A program made the position numbers and the translations under genes. A model generated the notes under the pieces. The model saw only the letters and a program-made list of their open reading frames with translations. It ran no database searches and was not told where the DNA came from. From Podarcis vaucheri (Eukaryota), in the NCBI GenBank assembly GCA_965113315.1, contig OZ220372.1: a stretch of 64,000 nucleotides of DNA. The stretch is one strand, 5' to 3'. Position 1 is the stretch's first letter. Each line of letters opens with the position of its first letter. Positions 1,331 to 56,397 of this stretch are shown piece after piece.

Positions 1331-1456
1331 AATCAATACTGAACATTGCTAACAACCTAATGAACAACCTAACCTGTGAGCCAGACACTTGTGTGTACAT
1401 CAGTTTTACTGCAGCAACCATGGAAATATTTTTGGGGTGCTTCTCTTGGCTTAGAT

Positions 1457-2992
1457 CAGTGTTTCCCAACCGGTGTTCCGCGGCACACTAGTGTGCCGCC
1501 GGACGTTGCCTGGTGTGCCGTGGGAGGGAGGCGGGCGACTCGGGCTAATCCTCCGACGAGCTCCACCTCCAGACCCATTCCTCAAATCCTTTAACCCAGG
1601 AAGGCAGGAGGGCGGGGAGGGGGGGGGAGAAAGAGAAAAAAGAAAGGGTGGAAAAAAAGAAGGGGAAGAGAAAATATTTTTTTAAAAAAAGGAAAGAGAG
1701 GGGAAAAAGCGAGGGATGGAGGAAGGGGAAGGGGGAAGAAGATGGGGGGTCTTTGTGTATAAACAGAAGGGGAGGACAATGAAGAGGGGCGGGGCTTGGC
1801 AGGCAGCAGATAACTGGGGAGGGGGACGCGGCTGGCGGCGGCTCAAGGCAGGAAGGGAGGAGCTGCCTCGCGGAGAGTCTTGGGCTGCAGAGATTTCCCG
1901 TTCAGGAGCGCGGGAGGCCACGCCGTGGATGGGAATCTCCTCCTCCTCTTCCTCCTCTTCCTCCTCCTCCTCCAGGAGAGAGGGTGGTCCGCCCCACCGA
2001 GTCGGGCCTGCTCAAGCGTGGGAGCCTATAGTTAGAGCTCAGCTCCTTTTCTTGCCTTCCCCGCCCCCCCACGGAGCACATTTTCCTCCCCCCCAACCCC
2101 CGCATGTAGAATAGAAGCCCTCCAGCCTCCACGGTGCACAAACTCTCCCCTCTGCAACGAAGCGCTTTGTTGCATATCTTTGGTGAGGTTTTTAGGCAGT
2201 CTTGGTGCACCTTAAATCAGCGCTAATTGCGCTTGGACACAGTATTTACTTCTGAGTAGGCCCCCTTCTCCCCCCCCCCCGGTAGCACCTGACGTTGCTA
2301 TTCGTATCATCAGGTTTGTTTGTTGATAATTTAATTGTTTTAAAAGCATCATGCTAAAGAGCTCTCTCCCACCCCCAGACCCTTGGGCAAAACAGAAACA
2401 CACACATACACAAACACAGAGATTGAGCCCTGTAGGTTTTATGAAATGAATGGATTCTGAATGCCTGTTTCAGTGGCTTGTCCGCCTTAGGCTGCTGGGC
2501 CAGACACCTGTTACACGGTGCAGTCCGTAAGCTGTGAGCGCTGCTACCTGCCGCCGAGACCACGTAACGACAGTCTTGAAAGACCTACATTGGCTCCCAG
2601 TACCTTTCCGAGCACAATTCAAAGTGTTGGTGCTGACCTTTAAAGCCCTAAGCGGTTTCGGTCCAGTATACCTGAAGTAGCGTCTCCGCCACCATCGTTC
2701 AGCCCAGACACTGAGATCCAGTGCCAAGGGCCTTCTGGCAATTCCCTCACTGTGAAAAGTGAGGTTACAGGGAACCAGGCAGAGGGCCTTCTCGGTAGTG
2801 GCGCCCGCCCTGTGGAATGCCCTCCCATCAGACATCAAAGAGATAACCATTACCTTCTATGCTGTTACTATTTTTTTTATTTTTTTTTACATAAGTAAAA
2901 AGTGACCTTTCCCCATCTGGCATGGTGGTGTGCCTCGAGATTTTTTTCATGAAACAAGTGTGCCTTTGCCCAAAAAAGGTTGGGAAACACTG
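1457..2992 (+). mobile_element. Non-autonomous hAT (Charlie-like) element with captured cargo (copy A)
   Basis: TIRs CAGTGTTTCCCAACC...GGTTGGGAAACACTG. Perfect 8-bp TSD GCTTAGAT at 1449-1456 and 2993-3000. Arms shared with 7016-8332. Confidence 0.93.
2546..2846 (+). mobile_element. L2 LINE 3' ORF fragment inside hAT copy A
   Basis: Plus frame reads DHVTTVLKDLHWLPVPFRAQFKVLVLTFKAL...RAFSVVAPALWNALPSDIK with stops, which matches the L2 C-terminal LHWLPV and WNxLP motifs. Confidence 0.85.
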
Positions 2993-4159
2993 GCTTAGAT
3001 TTTCCAACTACTGTGATTCAAAGCAATACCTTTTACTGGACCCAAGTTGTTTGGAATAAGGAAAAATCAGGCAAGGATTCCACTATTCCACTATTGCCAT
3101 TTATTTTATTAAGAAGTTCCCTTCCCAGCTATTGATATTTTACACCAGGGCTGATATTTTACACCAGTGTATACAAACACTTGGTTGCCAGCTGAAAGAC
3201 TTAAGTCATATTGGTTGCTTATTACTTTATGAGAAGGCTCAGTTTTTTAGCAGCTTGTTCAATAGTTCCTGATTCAGATTGCTCACTGCAGAGTTCACTG
3301 TTTGACTTTTCTTTCACTCAGTCTGTATAGAGTTCTGTACCAGAATATTTTCTTTCTCTGAAATTGGTCGGCAAGAGTTCCTGCTCCGACCTTTGTTTGG
3401 AAGGGAGGAACTTTAGTTGTACCACCAGGTCTGCTGATACCTGATCTGTGGCCTGGCTTTCGTGAGGATTCAAGTCCAGCCTTAGCTTCCTGAATTACCA
3501 TATCAAGTAGCAAGGAAGGGACAGAACTAAAGCAGGTGTCATATTGCAGTCACTGGCAGCCATTAAAACATCTGCCTTGCTCTTGTTTTGTACTTTTTTA
3601 TATAATCACACACAGTTCCCTGCAGACTGCTTGAGAATCTATCTAGTGTTCCTGTGAGCTTAAACCACCTGCTTCAAATGACATTTTTGCAAGTTTTAGT
3701 CATTATTGTCTCAGTCTTTCTTCACTGCCCAAAATAAAAACAACTCCCCCCTAAACTAACCTGAACAGAAACCTAGGACTTTTAAAAATAAAAGCAAATA
3801 GTCCCCTCCCCTCTTAAAGGATTTGAGAATGTTGAATCCATTTTCCAAATATGCTAAGATGCTAGACATTTATGAGGGTGGGGTAAGAGAGATGGTTTGG
3901 AAATATTACTGCATGATATTATGTTCTGAAACATAATATGTAACAAATTCTTATTTAGGCATTTTCTGACATGATTTTTTTTTAGGTCTAGCTATTGTTA
4001 TGACTCTTGACCAATAGGTCTTTTGTTAGGCAGATTGCTGGCTAACGATAAAAGATGGCTGTTGATGTTTCATCAATGGGTGCTAATAGTTAGGAGATGG
4101 CCTCCTGATATTTGAAGTAACCTCTATGGGGTTTTTTTGAATGACATACCCCCAATGGA

Positions 4160-4525
4160 GGGGATGTGGGTGGCGCTGTGGTCTAAACCACAGAGCCTAG
4201 GGCTTGCCGATCAGAAGGTCTGATCGGCGGTTTGAATCCCAGCGATGGGGTGAGCCCCCGTTGCTCAGTCCCTGCTCCTGCCAACCTAGCAGTTTGAAAG
4301 CACGCCAAAAAAAAAGTGCAAGTAGATAAATAGGTACCGCTCCAGCAGGAAGGTAAACGGTGTTTCCATGTGCTGCTCTGGTTTGCCAGAAGTGGCTTAG
4401 ACATGCCGGCCACATGACCCAGAAGCTGTACGCCGGCTCCCTTGGCCAATAAAATGAGATGAGCGCCACAACCCCAGAGTCTGCCACAACTGGACCTAAT
4501 GGTCAGGGGTCCCTTTACCTTTACC
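4160..4525 (+). mobile_element. Sauria SINE, full length
   Basis: tRNA-like head GGGAtGtGGGTGGCGCTGTGGTCTAAACC, core GTGCAAGTAGATAAATAGGTACC, (ACCTTT)n tail. TACCCCCAA occurs in both flanks. Confidence 0.9.
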
Positions 4526-5267
4526 CCCAACAGACCTTGCAGAAGGTGTCACCCCCCACAAGGGCTAAGGTTGTGGGTGGGTGGGTGGGTGGGTGGATGA
4601 GAGAGAGAGAACAAGCAGTATTTGCCTTGTAGGACTTTCACATTCATTTATGCTCTGCTTTTAGCTTTGCACATCAAGCAAATGTTACAAAGTTACTGTA
4701 AGTATTCAATGCTCTATTATCCAAAAGAAATTAAACCAATATTGTTGCCCCTGGAACTTTTTACAGCTCAAAAATTGTGAGACATGCAATAGTTTTATGC
4801 TATTACCTTAATTTGTGAAAAGATTTAAACTGAAACTAAGAGCAACATATTGTAAAAAAAATAATACTTATTCAGAAAGCATATGCTTAAAAATGGGATT
4901 CATTACCTTGCAGTTGTGTTCCTTACAACTTTTGTATAAGGTTTAGTACTGTTAACCTGAAGTTTTGTGAAATACAAAAAAGATTAAAAGTCTAGAATCA
5001 GAAATGGAGTAGGAAAAAGGTGTGGCCTTGACTGAGGGGCAGGGAGAAAGCTTTGGAAAGAACAGGGATGTTCCTATGCCATCAAATGGAAGGGCCTGTA
5101 TTTAGGAAGGGTTAGGAAAAAGTGGAGGTGTTTGTAACAGTGGGTGGAAGCAAGCTAGTGCCAGAGGGCTTTCCAGCAGGCTTTGCTTAATGTTGTTAAT
5201 CCTATACTGTACTCTCTTACCTGGGATTACAGTTACTCTTATTAGTTGTTTTGTTTACCAGGGGGCC

Positions 5268-6205
5268 CATAGGCGCCTACTCCATGGGGCCTGAGGGGGC
5301 CCGAGCCCCCTCAAAAATTCGTTTGGGGGGCTCTGCCCCCCCCAATAATCTCGGGCGCCCCTCCATCAGAGCGCCGCCGCCGAGCATCAGCCTTTGTGGC
5401 CTTACCTGCCACGGCGTCCGCTGCACCTTCGTACCTGTAGAAGCACCCGAGCACCAGAAAGAGCGTGAGGAGCCCCATGGTGTCTGCCGCCTCTCCGCGC
5501 GCGAGAGGATCCGCAGCGCAAGACAGGGGATCGCATGCACACGAGCCAAGACACCGCACGAGCCGGGGGGGGACACGGGGGCGCGGTGCAAGCGGGCTCT
5601 ACCCAGGGCAGCAAGCGCGGAGTCCCATCCCTGCTCCCCGCCGCGCCTCCCTCGCCCTGCAAGGCGCCGCGATGCCGAAACCCTCCGGCTGCGCAACAGG
5701 CGCTCACTTCCGGGGAGGGAGCCCTGCTCTCCCCGCCTCCCTCTTCCGCGGGGCGGGCGGCCCCCGCCGAGGCGCCGCTTGGCGCAGAGACAACGGAGTT
5801 TGCTTGGCCGAGGGGCCAGGGCAGCCGTGCCGGTTGCAGCAACCCTCCTTCCCCAAAAGGGCAGCCCGCTTGCTTTGTTGGCATCTCTCGCCGCGCCTGG
5901 GAATGCCGCCGCCTCACCCAAAATGCCAAATGCTTGGAAATTCAGCTCACCTTAAAAAAATTAAAAAGGATTGCCTGCTTCAAGAGCGTGGAGGGGAATA
6001 ACTAACCCGCAAGCCACTGGGGTGGGAAGGGGGAAATGCAGCCTTGCATTAGGGAAAGAAAATCTTTAAAGAAAAACTTTAAAGAAAAAAAATCTTTAAA
6101 GAAAAACTTTAAAACTCACTAATTTTCATCTAAAATTTAGAAAACTTCCTGGGGCAGGACCCCGGTATGGACCCCCCCAATATTTTTTATAAGTCGGCGC
6201 CCCTG
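5268..6205. mobile_element. Non-autonomous TIR element (probably hAT) with captured CpG-island/first-exon cargo
   Basis: Imperfect TIRs CATAGGCGCCTACT / AGTCGGCGCCCCTG. Flanks CCAGGGGGCC and CCAGGGGCC form an imperfect TSD. The interior is GC-rich within AT-rich surroundings. Confidence 0.75.
5406..5478 (-). pseudogene. Captured first coding exon encoding a signal peptide (donor gene not identified)
   Basis: Strong Kozak context GACACCATGG, peptide MGLLTLFLVLGCFYRYEGAADAVA, then a phase-1 donor G|GTAAGG. GC-rich 5' region with an ETS-type CACTTCCGG at 5705-5713. Confidence 0.6.
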
Positions 6206-7015
6206 CCAGGGGCCCAGTGTTTCTGTGTTATCAACACATATCCTCCTATATGAGTAAATATGTTTCCGTAATATGATCTGTTACTTCAGAAGCATTTTTA
6301 TTTGCATGCAGCACACTTTAAAAACACACACAGATGTCCTGACTAGAGGCAGTGTGACTCTAAAAGTTAAAGAACATAAGCAAAAGCTACTTAGCACCCC
6401 CAACACACACTAACATTTTAAGCTGTTTGTAACAACTTAAACAAACTTCCTTGATTGGATTTATGCTAATGGATCTCCTGTAGGCATTTCTAATTCATTT
6501 ACATTTAATTTTAAGGTTGCCTCTGTTGTGTTTCCAATTCAAACTAATACCATTAACAGATAAAATGAAAGTGTGTAACAGGTCAGAAGCCACAAGATGG
6601 CAATAGTTGAAGAGCAATTTGCTTCAAGAAGGAGTTGGATTGTAGATACTACAGTGAGATTACTCCTACTATGTTATTTATATAGTGCCCATCATCTGTA
6701 GCTAGAAAGGCACTTTATGTAATTAAATATAATTTTATTTTCTGTACTGATGGGAAAAGGAGGAAATGGAGGTGAAGGGATCTATCAAAGGTGTGTGGCA
6801 GAGCAATGCATAGCACACATATCTCCTTGCAGAGAAGAATATTGGACCAAATATGGTGGATTGAGAAACCCAAATTTTAGGTCCCTTCATGTCCCTATTT
6901 TGAACACAAAGTTACTTCTGTGACAGTTCCAAGAAGTACAAAACAGGAAATGGGTATCTAGTGGATGTTTGTATGTTAAAAAGTCTTTAAGGGGCCATCA
7001 AATGGATGTTTAGAT

Positions 7016-8332
7016 CAGTGTTTCCCAACAGGTGTCCCGCGGCACACTAGTGTGTCGCGAGACGTTGCCTGGTGTGCCGTGGGAGGGAGGCGAGCGAGTC
7101 GGGCGGCGAGAGGCGGGGCGGCGGCAGCAAGGAGAGGCCGCCCAGCGCGGGGCTCTCGCCGTCTGCCTGCCTGGCTGCCTGCGTGGCGCTGACGTCACGG
7201 GGCTGTAACGTGCCCCACATAGGCACACACGGGGCGGCGAGCGAGCTCCCTCCCACATCCCATCGCCGGCTCTGCACCAGGCGGTAGAGCTCGGCGAAGT
7301 CGCCGCGCTGGAAGGCCAGCAGCGCGCGCGCCTTGCCCTGGCTCTCGCCCGCCTGCGCCTCCAGGCACGGCGCCTCGGCGTCGGGCGGCAGCGAGCCCAG
7401 GAAGCGGCCCAGCCGGCCGGGGTCGCCCGCCTGCAGCAGCGCCTCGCACACGCACGAGACCTGCTCCGCCGAGAAGCGCGGCGAGCGCGGAGGATCGGGC
7501 GCGGCGGAGGCCAGCCCCGCGCTTGGAGAGGACGCAGCAGCCGTCGCCAAACCCGATCCTCCTCCTCCTGCTCCGCCGCCGTCCTCTGGCTCTCGGCCGG
7601 GAGGAGCCTGCGGCGATGGGGCGGGCGCCAAAGTTGGCAGAAGTTGGCGCGCCTCCTCGGCAGCGCCTTCGTCCTCCTCCTCCTGCCTCTGCTCTCCTCC
7701 GGCGGCGGGGGCGCGCTGCCCTCCCCGGCCGGGGGGCTCGGTGGGGCCTGCGGGGAAGGAGGCCATGTTCGCGGCGCGCGGGATCACGGCCCCCCTCGCC
7801 CGCCTCCGGTCCGCTCCCCTCCCCCTGCGCGCTGCCCTAGCCGTGCGGGTCTCCTCCCCCTGCGCCGCCGTCCCCTTTCCACATCCTAGGAGCCGCGGTC
7901 CGCCTTCCGCCCCCGGGCCGCGGCGCGGCTCCCAGCCTGGGCTGGCCTCCGCCTCCTGGGACGCGCGCCCACCCCCGCGGCCCCCCAAACTTCGGAGCAA
8001 CTCTCCAGACGCTTCTCCCCCGCCTCGGTCTCCCTCCTTTCCACTTCTCTTCCCCCCTTCCTTCCCTCTTTCTTTCTCTTTCTCTCCCACCCGCCTTTCC
8101 TTCTATTAACTTTCCTTTCCCCTTCCCATGTAGAACAGTCCCTGCAAATAAAAACCTAGCATATTTGAAAGAGGGATGCTAGCCTAACCATTACCTTCTA
8201 TGCTGTTACTATTTTTTTATTTTTTTTTACATAAGTAAAAAGTGACCTTTCCCCATCTGGCATGGTGGTGTGCCTCGAGATTTTTTTCATGAAACAAGTG
8301 TGCCTTTGCCCAAAAAAGGTTGGGAAACACTG
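7016..8332 (+). mobile_element. Non-autonomous hAT (Charlie-like) element with captured SIX5 fragment (copy B)
   Basis: Same TIRs as copy A. Perfect 8-bp TSD GTTTAGAT at 7008-7015 and 8333-8340. Confidence 0.93.
7266..7766 (-). pseudogene. SIX5: Transposon-captured SIX5 exon-1 fragment (N-terminus plus N-terminal half of the SIX domain, no homeodomain)
   Basis: MASFPAGP...EEEDEGAAEEARQLLPTL...RFSAEQVSCVCEALLQAGDPGRLGRFLGSLPP...KARALLAFQRGDFAELYRLVQSR parallels SIX5 as I recall it (MATLPAEP...EEEARQLLQTL...RFSPEQVACVCEALLQAG...RARALVAFQRGEYAELYRLLESR). Similarity stops abruptly at about 7266. Confidence 0.88.
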
Positions 8333-9267
8333 GTTTAGATACTATCTCCAATAAAAGGGTTATATATAATGTGGTGGAGTTGTGCTGAAGTCCATATGTT
8401 TTGGAAACTAGTGATTACAGAGAGCTGTACACTTAGAAGTATAAATGTGATTGCAGACCCTAAACTATGTATTTTGTCATTTTCTTTTTAATAAATGTAA
8501 TGCAGTTTTTCTATGGAAACAGTTAATTATATATATTCTGGTAGCTGCACAATTAGTAATCACTCAGTGCTGGAAAGGCACTTCATGTTATATCCTTGAT
8601 AACTGGTTCAAGGAAGTTATGTTCATTGCTATCTCAAATTGACATGTAATCTTTGTGTGCCATTAGGTGATGCTGATGCTTCTGATCTCACCTCTGTTTG
8701 GAGGTTATATTTAATAACAGTCACATGGGTGGCAAATCCCTTCAAAATATTATTTTATTTGGCAGTGTCTGTAAACAGGAAAGCCTTTCTCCTCCCCCCA
8801 TTTCCTTCACTGTATAATGTGTTTGTATTCTTATGCCCCATTTATAATTTCAGAATTTCCATTCAGTTCTTCCCTTGGATGGTTTTCCTAAAATACTTAC
8901 AGTTGAAAGAGAGTGGGGAACAAGATGAAGTCAAGAAAACAGAGACAGACTGTGCACCTATTCAGCCACATGTGCATAGGCATAGAGTTGGCATTGCCTA
9001 ATTAAAGCCATTTGCTGCCAAAAAGGCAAGATGGAGCAAAGCCACCTAACATCACATATTACCTAAGGATAGTAATTTATGCAGAAGAGTGTTGCTGATT
9101 ATCTTAATTGGTACTGAGTTAATAGCTATATAAGAGAACTACACCTTGGGCAATTGCTAACTGTAATGGTTTGAAGATGTGCTTATCATCAACACAAGTG
9201 CAGTGATTATGCGCTCAGGCAAACTTTCAGTTTTGTTAAGCTCTTACATGTCTTACTGCCATGGCTT

Positions 9268-17735: not shown

Positions 17736-18309
17736 CAATATTTTTCACCCTATAGGACGCACCGTCCCATAAGACGCACCTAGGTTTTTTTTGGGGGGGG
17801 AATAAAGGGGGGGAATTATTTTTTCCCCCAGACGCGGGGCTGGGGCCCGAGCTTCCCCCGACCCCAGCCCCCAGAACAGGCAACTCTCCGCAAGCAGCTG
17901 GAGCCCAGCGCAGGGCTCCCGTGCCTTGCGGAGAGGTGCACGAAGTCTGTGCACGCTGGGCTCAACGCGCTCAGCCTTCATCATGCAGGCAACTCTCCGC
18001 AAGCAGCAGGAGCCCAGCGCTGGGCTCCCGTGCCTTGCGGAGAGGTGCGCGAAGTCTGGGCGTGCTGAGCTCAGCGTGCCCAGCCTTCGGCATGCAGGCA
18101 ACTCTCCGCAAGCAGCAGGAGCCCGGTGCGGGCTCCCGCTGCTTGCGGAGATCTGCGGGAAGCCTGGAGAGTGAGAGGGGTCGGTGCGCACCGACGCCTC
18201 TCGCTCTCCAGGCTTCAGCGAAAGCCTGCATTCACCCCATAGGGCACACACACATTTCCCCTTCATTTTTGGAGGGCAAAAAGTGTGTCCTATGGGGCGA
18301 AAAATACGG
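17736..18309 (-). mobile_element. Tc1/mariner-pogo MITE (family 2) with internal 109-bp tandem repeat
   Basis: Termini TA|CaaTATTTTTCaCCCTATAGGACGCACC and GGGCGAAAAATACGG|TA. Repeat units start at 17877, 17986 and 18095. Confidence 0.85.
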
Positions 18310-18999
18310 TAATTACTGTGAGAGAAATCTAGTACACAGAATTGGAGAATAAGGGAAAGAACACATGCAAAGGTGTGTATTAAGAGCAACAAGGAATTCA
18401 TCTAAAAATATTACACACATGGATGGAGAACAAAGCACTTGCATAACAATGCAAGGGAGTGTCTATCAAATATCTGAAATTAATCTGCAAAGTGGAAAGA
18501 ACAGCACTGCTCTATTGAGGGGGTTTTTTTCAAAACAATATAGAAAGCACTTAAACAGAACTCTCCCACCCCACCCTCCCTACAAATATATATAATTACA
18601 ATGATCTCCCCTCCCCTGATTGCTCACTTTTATTTCGGGTCACTTAATAATAATTTTATTATTTATATTCCTCCCATCTGGCTGGGTTTCCCTAGCCACT
18701 CTGGGCGGCTTACAGAATATAGCACAAATGATAACCCCACCACCACCACCACACACACATCCTGGAGAGTCATGTCCGGATAACAATATTGGGAGATATC
18801 ATGGCATAATATTGTCCCCAATGCTCTTCAACTCTGAAATGAAGCCACTGAGTGTGGCCATTCGGCGTTTCAGGGCAGTGTGTCGTCTGTGCTCTGGGAG
18901 TGGTAGCCAATGTTGCTGAAGCCAGAACTGGGATTCAAGATGACTAAGAGATTGGGGAACAGGGTCAAATGAACAAAACAAATTTCAGTAGGGACAAAT

Positions 19000-21286: not shown

Positions 21287-21560
21287 CTAAATAAAGATAA
21301 TACACAAAATATATTATTCTCCATAATACATACAATTAGAATTAAGTAAAACAGTAGTAATAAAATTAAATGGGAAAAGTGGTATGGAAAACAGGCAAGT
21401 GTACTACACAAACGCATCAAAACCCCTACAAATTAGAAGCATTTTAAGAACTTAGGGAATTCAAAGGAAGAGCTGCTCCATAAGACAATAACCAGTTCTC
21501 TTCAGAAGGTGACTGATGAATATTTCAATGGAGGTGACTCAGATATTCAACTCTGAGTCA

Positions 21561-21697
21561 TAGCATTTCCCAACCTTGGGCCTCCAGCTGTTTTTTGGAC
21601 TACAACTCCCATAATCCTCAGCTAGGAAGACCAGTGGTCAGGGATAATGGGAATTGTAGTTCGAAAACAGCTGGAGGCCCAAGGTTGGGAAACACTG
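21561..21697. mobile_element. Palindromic hAT MITE with the same TIR type as copies A and B
   Basis: tAGcaTTTCCCAACCTTGGGCCTCCAGCTGTTT...GACTACAACTCCCAT / ATGGGAATTGTAGT...AAACAGCTGGAGGCCCAAGGTTGGGAAACACTG. Confidence 0.8.
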
Positions 21698-56015: not shown

Positions 56016-56397
56016 GGGACGCGGGTGGTGCTGTGGTCTAAACCACTGAGCCTCTTGGGCTTGCCAATCAGAAGGTCGGCAGTTCGAATCCCCATGATGG
56101 GGTGAGCTCCCTTTGCTTGGTCCCAGCTGCTGCCAACATAGAAGTTCAAAAGCACGCCAAAACAAAGTGCAAGTAGATAAATAGGTACCGCTTCAGCGGG
56201 AAGGTAAATGGCGTTTCCGTGCGCTGCTCTGGTTTCAGTGTTCTGTTGCGCCAGAAGCGGCTTAGTCATGCTGCCCACATGACCTGAAAAACTGTCTGCG
56301 GACAACGCCGGCTCCCTCGGCCTGTAAAGTGAGATGAGCGCCGCAACCCCAGAGTCATTTGCGACTGGACTTAACTGTCAGGGGTCCTTTACCTTTT
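56016..56397 (+). mobile_element. Sauria SINE, full length
   Basis: GGGACGCGGGTGGTGCTGTGGTCTAAAACC head and CCTTTACCTTTTT tail. TSD AAACCTCACTGTA / AAACCTCATTGTA. Confidence 0.9.

Follow-up and report, generated by a model that had tools for sequence, protein, structure and literature searches.

The 64-kb window from Podarcis vaucheri analysed here (the whole stretch of 64,000 nt from contig OZ220372.1, which runs without any N) contains near its start two sibling transposable elements (TEs) which share their ends and differ in what lies between them: element 1 at 1457-2992 and element 2 at 7016-8332. The left arms (1457-1545 and 7016-7104, 89 bp each) are separated by 7 substitutions (92% identity), and the right arms (2844-2992, 149 bp, and 8185-8332, 148 bp) are 99.3% identical, one T in a run being the sole difference. 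Both elements end in the terminal inverted repeat (TIR) CAGTGTTTCCCAACC, which is free of mismatches over 15 bp in element 1 and over 14 bp in element 2, and beyond base 15 the two ends are no longer inverted copies of one another. Each is bordered by its own perfect 8-bp target-site duplication (TSD), GCTTAGAT for element 1 (1449-1456 and 2993-3000) and GTTTAGAT for element 2 (7008-7015 and 8333-8340), with TA at positions 4-5 in both cases. Alignment confirmed the arms, TIRs and TSDs as they had been given in a preliminary description of this DNA. A 20-nt pattern of the ends matches the window four times against 0.00 times expected from shuffles, so chance does not explain the matches, and we found no further copies of the arm family elsewhere in the 64 kb. 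The left arm of element 1 contains a perfect 20-nt palindrome, GCGGCACACTAGTGTGCCGC (1480-1499), and 10 of the 17 GTGTGCC motifs of the window are located inside the two elements; these repeats are likely to be transposase-binding sites, as predicted from the sequence. The flanks of the two elements are unrelated to each other and the same is true for their interiors, for which the best local alignments score 20-25 versus 20-23 for reversed or complemented controls. No hidden similarity between the interiors rose above these controls, the matches being of low complexity only.

The interior of element 2 includes a piece of a host gene. A minus-strand reading frame starts with the ATG at 7766, and its residues 98-170 match the Pfam domain SIX1_SD (E 3e-13, profile positions 1-70 of 113) and the SIX1 crystal structure (PDB 4egc, E 1.4e-13). 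In a search of 1.84 billion representatives, and likewise in a word-indexed one, SIX5 of snake, tuatara, turtles and marsupials appeared among the top matches, and the full-length matched proteins checked by name (snake, tuatara, marsupial) were all SIX5. The N-terminus MASFPA... is common to the cargo frame and snake SIX5. The homology reaches as far as ...ELYRLVQSR and stops at ~7264; in true SIX5 the same exon goes on with PFAA.HHPFLQDLY. Since this break lies inside an exon, the fragment was copied as DNA and not from spliced RNA, and since the captured SD domain is truncated, a functional SIX5 is expected elsewhere in the genome. The SIX5-derived DNA is composed of 73-77% G and C residues (73% in the upstream part, 7767-8100) with a CpG observed/expected ratio (o/e) of ~1.0. 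Judged from these matches, the cargo of element 2 is the SIX5 upstream CpG island together with the ATG and 167 codons; the break falls within exon 1, in the SD domain. This is the only gene-derived cargo seen in the arm family here.

A second copy of the same junction can be read from another species. The top protein match of the cargo frame is a 380-aa gene model of Podarcis muralis (UniRef A0A670I980, here P0001), which according to tblastn follows the window from 8102 through the SIX5 fragment, the adjoining segment 7105-7263 and the left arm up to the TIR ('GTPVGKHW'; '...LVCRGTPVGKHW'). Past the TIR it reads 'SKEQNILHSTHPLTHQD' where the window has 'SKHPFDG', i.e. a different flank, and the back-translated flank of P0001, GTCNAARG, is compatible with the target preference of the family. 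The same capture junction beside a different flank, combined with an empty site at the position of element 2 in relatives (see below), indicates a single capture followed by transposition, as far as the gene model can be taken to represent the genomic sequence. In a second protein search, no further chimeric gene models were found besides P0001.

The insertions themselves can be dated relative to related species. We compared 6,000 nt of the window (1350-7349) with contigs of four runs, X1, X4, X7 and X10, labelled as four organisms (A, B, D and F), with single-copy baseline depths of ~50-60, 9, 32 and 15, respectively. Flanking DNA differs from that of the X4, X7 and X10 species by ~1-2%. On the right side of element 1, single-copy contigs of X4, X7 and X10 align from 2991 rightwards and extend 147-852 nt leftwards without the arm; on its left side, position 1410 is covered by contigs of these runs at the same depths and the X7 piece ends near 1447. 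The contigs fit a skip of 1,536 + 8 nt that leaves one TSD copy, which is consistent with the absence of element 1 from these three species. At element 2, the alignment of the X4, X7 and X10 contigs breaks off precisely where the left TSD ends (7015), and these contigs continue for 201-229 nt without the arm, hence element 2 is absent there. X1 contigs in turn span the flank-arm junction of element 2 (6828-7066) with 0 differences. Empty sites with a single TSD copy in related species, a check named beforehand, are thus what element 1 fits and what is seen for element 2 from the left, and their presence in three related species upholds the view that the family was recently active.

The family is also abundant, as had been supposed, and its own sequence reaches further than the shared arms. 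Summed contig depth over the arms is ~6,000-11,000x the single-copy level in all four runs, which means that the arms are present in the order of thousands of copies. The bin 7150-7349 still reaches ~1,200-6,000x baseline, a joint 7125->7223 was found in all four runs, and the joints 1534->7108 (X10) and 7207->2923 (X1) connect the segment 7105-7263 to family arms. Other family copies have GCATATTTGGAAGAGGGATGCTAGCC directly before 2844, which matches element 2 at 8159-8184 with one difference (X4, X7). Depth, joints and this match together assign 7105-7263 and no less than 8159-8184 to the family and not to the cargo, and the presence of GCATATTTGGAAGAGGGATGCTAGCC before 2844 in other copies makes the right arm of element 1 the truncated one. 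The limits of the 89-bp and 149-bp arms therefore merely mark where the shorter, more truncated element 1 ends. We had considered that the identical arm breakpoints might represent a fixed swap site, and rejected this because the shorter copy sets the boundary and the arms of element 2 reach further. The segment 7105-7263 has 74% GC and a CpG o/e of 0.84. About 185 bp of what was supposed to be cargo in element 2 is consequently the family's own CpG-rich sequence, so the CpG-rich interiors of this family are not all captured. A perfect TGACGTCA site, resembling a cAMP response element (CRE-like), is located at 7186-7196 within this stretch, and the transposon itself may carry promoter-like sequence.

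The interior of element 1 is of a different nature. Its first part (1546-2572) has 54.5% GC and a CpG o/e of 0.51, with no Pfam and no Rfam match to indicate coding or RNA content. Over 1704-2599, contigs that show 1-5 differences reach depths of 156-180 (X4), 1,780-2,470 (X7) and 1,308 (X10), corresponding to ~17-20, 55-77 and 87 copies, and the summed depth is higher in X1. The adjoining 2573-2843 is a repeat fragment with a summed depth of ~100,000x baseline in all four runs, and loose ends of other repeat copies give a consensus at 2573 and 2651. Since multi-copy contigs cross 2573, the composite is fixed in the element 1 subfamily. Element 1 differs from these contigs at five listed positions (~0.5%) and is a young member of this amplified subfamily. 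The preliminary description had presented both interiors as unrelated, GC-rich, host-like DNA originating from CpG islands or first exons. They are unrelated, but that of element 1 is not unique single-copy host DNA, being amplified and including a repeat fragment; an origin from a CpG island and first exon holds for element 2, through SIX5, and fails for element 1, and the GC-richness that is pronounced in element 2 is modest only in element 1. The features of both elements are collected in Table 1.

Table 1. Coordinates of the parts of elements 1 and 2 in the window, with the evidence for each
Feature	Position	Strand	Evidence or remark
Left TSD copy, element 1	1449-1456		Identical to 2993-3000; contigs of relatives fit a single copy at the empty site
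Element 1 left arm: 15-bp TIR, palindrome, GTGTGCC motifs	1457-1545	+	92% identity to 7016-7104; thousands-fold summed depth
Element 1 interior: GA-rich tract, (TCC)n run, 54.5% GC	1546-2572		Multi-copy contigs; no Pfam/Rfam match
Hyper-abundant interspersed repeat fragment adjoining right arm	2573-2843		Summed depth ~100,000x baseline
Element 1 right arm with terminal inverted repeat	2844-2992	+	99.3% identity to 8185-8332
Right TSD copy, element 1 (GCTTAGAT)	2993-3000		X4, X7 and X10 contigs start aligning at 2991
Left TSD copy, element 2 (GTTTAGAT)	7008-7015		Identical to 8333-8340; X4, X7 and X10 contigs stop at 7015
Element 2 left arm: TIR, palindrome, GTGTGCC motifs	7016-7104	+	Arm alignment, end pattern
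CpG-rich internal sequence of the family, continuing the left arm, not cargo	7105-7263	+	Contig depth and joints
Captured SIX5 coding fragment, ATG at 7766 to codon 167	7264-7766	-	Pfam SIX1_SD, PDB 4egc, SIX5 proteins
SIX5 upstream DNA (5' untranslated region (5'UTR) or promoter, CpG island); far boundary approximate	7767-8100	-	73% GC, CpG o/e 1.0; adjoins the coding fragment
AT-richer segment; at least 8159-8184 is family right-arm extension	8101-8184	+	Loose-end consensus before 2844 (X4, X7), one difference
Element 2 right arm with terminal inverted repeat	8185-8332	+	Arm alignment
Right TSD copy, element 2 (GTTTAGAT)	8333-8340		Identical to 7008-7015

The 8-bp TSDs, the 15-bp TIR starting with CAG and the TA at positions 4-5 of the TSDs fit the hAT superfamily to which the elements had initially been assigned, and more precisely its Buster/Charlie/SPIN type. 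CAGTGTTTCCCAACC is a short TIR in the range typical of hAT elements (about 10-25 bp) with the YARNG/CAG start, and both TSDs agree with the nnnTAnnn target preference. This motif is reportedly the target consensus given for Buster/Charlie-type elements by Arensburger et al. in 2011. The elements likewise have the make-up of Pack-TIRs: TIRs and a TSD enclose an interior without an encoded transposase, which in element 2 is derived from a host gene (the SIX5 5' fragment), and copies with distinct TSDs exist, with ~17-90 copies of the element 1 type in X4, X7 and X10; for element 2 this last point is only partly secure, depending as it does on the P0001 gene model. The comparison with Mutator-like transposable elements (MULEs) made in the preliminary description was wrong with respect to structure. 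TSDs of 9-11 bp and long TIRs (in Pack-MULEs ~100 bp and upwards) characterise MULEs, whereas the TSD measures 8 bp and the TIR 15 bp here, and the correct class is Pack-TIR (hAT).

Related ends occur outside lizards. Fifty JGI metagenome contig loci from a few host-associated metagenomes carry the right-end 23-mer, in the form of MITEs (miniature inverted-repeat transposable elements) of 176-511 bp and one 1,629-bp element; some have perfect TSDs and many of the flanks have TA at positions 4-5. None of these loci matched the window, its short interspersed element (SINE) included, at E 1e-10, and a short-word search with element 1 found the 23-25-nt end only, past which the likeness to the window is loose. 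As no locus matches the window or its SINE, the host is not a squamate, and the MITEs belong to a related family in another, non-squamate host which is of no help in defining the consensus of the lizard family. The left-end palindrome has been kept by paired changes (GGCACACTAGTGTGCC in the window, GGCACCCTAGGGTGCC in the JGI loci), suggesting that it is functional, and the MITEs suggest a hAT lineage which is widespread and possibly moves horizontally. Within the window, an old MITE of ~141 bp (21557-21697) shares the terminal 17 nt of its right end (CAGTGTTTCCCAACCTT) with the arm family and is otherwise unrelated, with long internal inverted repeats; its mobilisation may depend on the family's transposase or on a relative of that enzyme.

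A third element lies between the two siblings, at ~5268-6205 (5258-6214). It belongs to a different TIR family: its ends are CATAGGCGCCTAC and CAGGGGCGCCGAC, and the copies of its direct repeat, CCAGGGG(G)CC, differ by one G. This element, too, contains a CpG island (61% GC, o/e 0.81). In X4 and X10, contigs pass unbroken from 5257 to 6206/6214, thus element 3 is absent there as well; X1 contigs cross its junctions with 0 differences. The core of its cargo (5550-5950) is found at ~1-2x baseline in X4, X7 and X10 versus ~20x in X1, suggesting that this cargo was captured and amplified in the source lineage, and the window copy differs from the multi-copy contigs of X1 at ~16 positions. In the 64-kb window, the CpG-island-like stretches of at least 500 bp are 1361-2020, 5241-6020 and 6941-8160, each of them within a TIR element; the other CpG patches are a repeat-associated one of 440 bp (17881-18320) and one of 200 bp inside a SINE (56181-56380). 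Word shares of a 7.2-kb stretch were 0.76, 0.68 and 0.54 in three runs of organism A (X1, X3 and X6, respectively), and the three insertions may be polymorphic within that species. The tRNA-derived SINE, present at 4161-4525 and 56076-56235, reaches a summed depth of ~300,000x baseline in each of the four species. A joint 4525->4161, at which the end of the SINE leads back into its start, is found in many contigs and suggests that SINE copies elsewhere in the genomes lie in tandem or next to one another.

We consider it probable that both sibling elements are non-autonomous and belong to a single, very abundant hAT family of lacertids, that their middles were replaced, and that the composites then kept transposing. 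A transposase encoded elsewhere would mobilise the elements in trans, probably recognising the 15-bp TIRs, the subterminal GTGTGCC motifs and the palindrome, and the middles would have been replaced in separate sublineages of the family. Of the family sequence, element 2 would retain ~250 bp on the left and no less than 175 bp on the right, with ~840 bp of SIX5-locus DNA in inverted orientation between them, while element 1 would retain just the 89-bp and 149-bp ends around ~1.3 kb of filler, including the fragment of another repeat. A switch of template, either while the double-strand gap left by excision was being repaired or at a stalled replication fork (abortive gap repair, or the FoSTeST model of Tan et al.), might account for the replacement, with transposition following. 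The combination of family ends, individual TSDs, absence from the orthologous sites of relatives and the existence of several copies implies that the composites transpose as units. Element 1 lacks family sequence that element 2 has, a pattern of replacement which makes a nested insertion unlikely for element 1. A number of points weigh against this interpretation. No autonomous transposase was detected by Pfam among the open reading frames of at least 150 aa in the 64-kb window, and no long open reading frames lie beside the related ends in the 50 metagenome loci. The depths are contig-based and summed over all similar contigs, and the copy numbers derived from them are orders of magnitude only. 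The empty site of element 2 is seen from the left side only, its right flank lying outside the 6,000-nt stretch, and X1 is possibly the sample behind the window assembly, so that it would lend no independent support to the insertions. Only 86 bp of the SIX5 fragment fall within the compared stretch, in a bin mixed with family sequence, which yields no copy count for this cargo, and the SIX5 breakpoints are read from element 2 itself. Finally, the flank of P0001 is the reading of a gene model and could in principle be a spliced exon, yet there is no GT donor at this place in the window.

One could imagine that plain copies of the family inserted first and that later breaks were patched on the spot with ectopic DNA. 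Such in-situ filling, independent of transposition, is the route that Tan et al. propose for most single-copy Pack-TIRs of animals, whose most frequent origin it is (PMC8277862), and it would leave the TSDs intact, as observed, but the three related species have no element whatever at either site rather than a cargo-less copy. Moreover, the composite interior of element 1 is multi-copy in four species, and the SIX5 composite stands with the same junction beside a different flank in P. muralis. In-situ filling is therefore contradicted at these two loci, where we regard it as very improbable; the original capture at another locus could have gone that way. Even less credible is the idea that an assembly artefact or a segmental duplication within the window lies behind the shared arms. 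The two copies are only 4 kb apart and their TSDs are near-identical (7 of 8 bases), but the flanks of the elements are unrelated, the junctions of element 3 and that between flank and arm of element 2 are spanned by X1 contigs without differences, and the likeness of the TSDs fits the target preference of the family, which is also seen in many flanks of the related MITEs. A more serious objection, although we are inclined to doubt it, is that there is no general capture system at all: a few fixed subfamilies would have interiors made of leftover or nested repeats, SIX5 would be a single accident, and the CpG-rich 'cargo' would mostly be the family's own. Indeed, the element 1 interior is amplified subfamily sequence with a repeat fragment, 7105-7263 is CpG-rich (74% GC, o/e 0.84) and nevertheless family-owned, just one gene-derived cargo has been verified in this family, and filler from other TEs has been described in hobo elements of Anolis (Novick 2011; PMC3014272). 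Against it speak the second, unrelated TIR element 1 kb away (5268-6205), which also has a CpG island, at ~1-2 copies in three relatives and ~20x baseline in X1, and the location of all CpG islands of at least 500 bp of the window inside the three TIR elements.

A broader possibility, which we put forward tentatively, is an active high-copy Pack-hAT system, possibly involving more than one TIR family, that repeatedly copies and scatters CpG-island promoters with first exons on a scale nearer to that of rice Pack-MULEs than to that of the few sporadic animal cases. If this were true, every insertion would plant a potential outward-reading promoter with an ATG. In element 2 the SIX5 island faces the left TIR, and by its orientation such insertions could drive transcription into the flank. 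Active cut-and-paste transposons are rare in amniotes, and mobile, multi-copy cases of gene capture have seldom been documented in vertebrates. Capture followed by spread through transposition was found for four animal families only in one broad survey (PMC8277862). The present case is an unusually clean vertebrate example, with perfect TSDs, empty sites in three relatives, the SIX5 cargo, a copy in a second species and two more cargo-bearing elements within 7 kb. Should many distinct cargos be confirmed, wall lizards would provide a natural system for studying how DNA transposons acquire host DNA, a question that is unsettled even for Pack-MULEs, and whether dispersed CpG-island promoters create new transcripts. 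Caution is required in such a search as part of the 'CpG-rich cargo' of this family is the transposon's own sequence.

Deletion derivatives of maize Ac/Ds elements keep their hAT ends and have the interior swapped for unrelated filler DNA by abortive gap repair. The elements described here resemble them in that the ends are kept and the interior is replaced, and by analogy the same mechanism could be at work. There is also a likeness to the SPIN, hAT-N3_AC and hAT-HT3 families of Anolis carolinensis (PMC3014272): the TIR is one base off that of hAT-N3_AC (CAGTGGTTCCCAACCT), and the TSD patterns of SPIN-like elements, NYYTARRN and NTCTAGAN, match GCTTAGAT and GTTTAGAT. Young non-autonomous forms in Anolis have varied interiors, and 'extraneous DNA' has been described in hAT and hobo elements (Novick et al. 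2011; PMC3014272). In contrast to the situation in Podarcis, this filler comes from other TEs, mainly in hobo elements, and exons or host genes are unmentioned; the Anolis families were compared with the window at their terminal bases only (PMC3014272). The literature searched yielded no account of Pack-type capture by hAT elements in lacertids or any other squamates. Tan et al. (2021; PMC8277862) listed 370 Pack-TIRs in 100 animal genomes, 208 of them hAT, with multicopy families in 4 of the 370 cases (three in frog, one in alligator) and a preference of multicopy Pack-TIRs for GC-rich DNA; for the sole lizard in that survey, anoCar2, no more than 77 TIR elements were annotated and the number of Pack-TIRs was 0. 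Animal Pack-TIRs, and especially Pack-hAT-N8_XT of Xenopus tropicalis (PMC8277862), share with the Podarcis elements the non-autonomous hAT structure, the 8-bp TSDs and a 5' fragment of a host gene, as well as copies at different sites with their own TSDs, absence from the orthologous sites of relatives and GC-rich cargo. They differ in the host, here a lizard, and in the cargo, which consists of a promoter, an ATG and 167 codons as opposed to a 291-bp piece of 5'UTR in Pack-hAT-N8_XT; furthermore, unlike the cases of the survey, three cargo-bearing elements have inserted here within 7 kb after a split of ~1-2% divergence. With the Pack-MULEs of rice and other plants (PMC8277862) the elements have in common that transposon ends shuttle and amplify GC-rich captured 5' gene fragments; they belong to another superfamily, however, and with their 8-bp TSD and 15-bp TIR they are not members of that group. 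What we describe is a mobile multicopy Pack-hAT in a lizard, a representative of a class known in animals and not a Pack-MULE.

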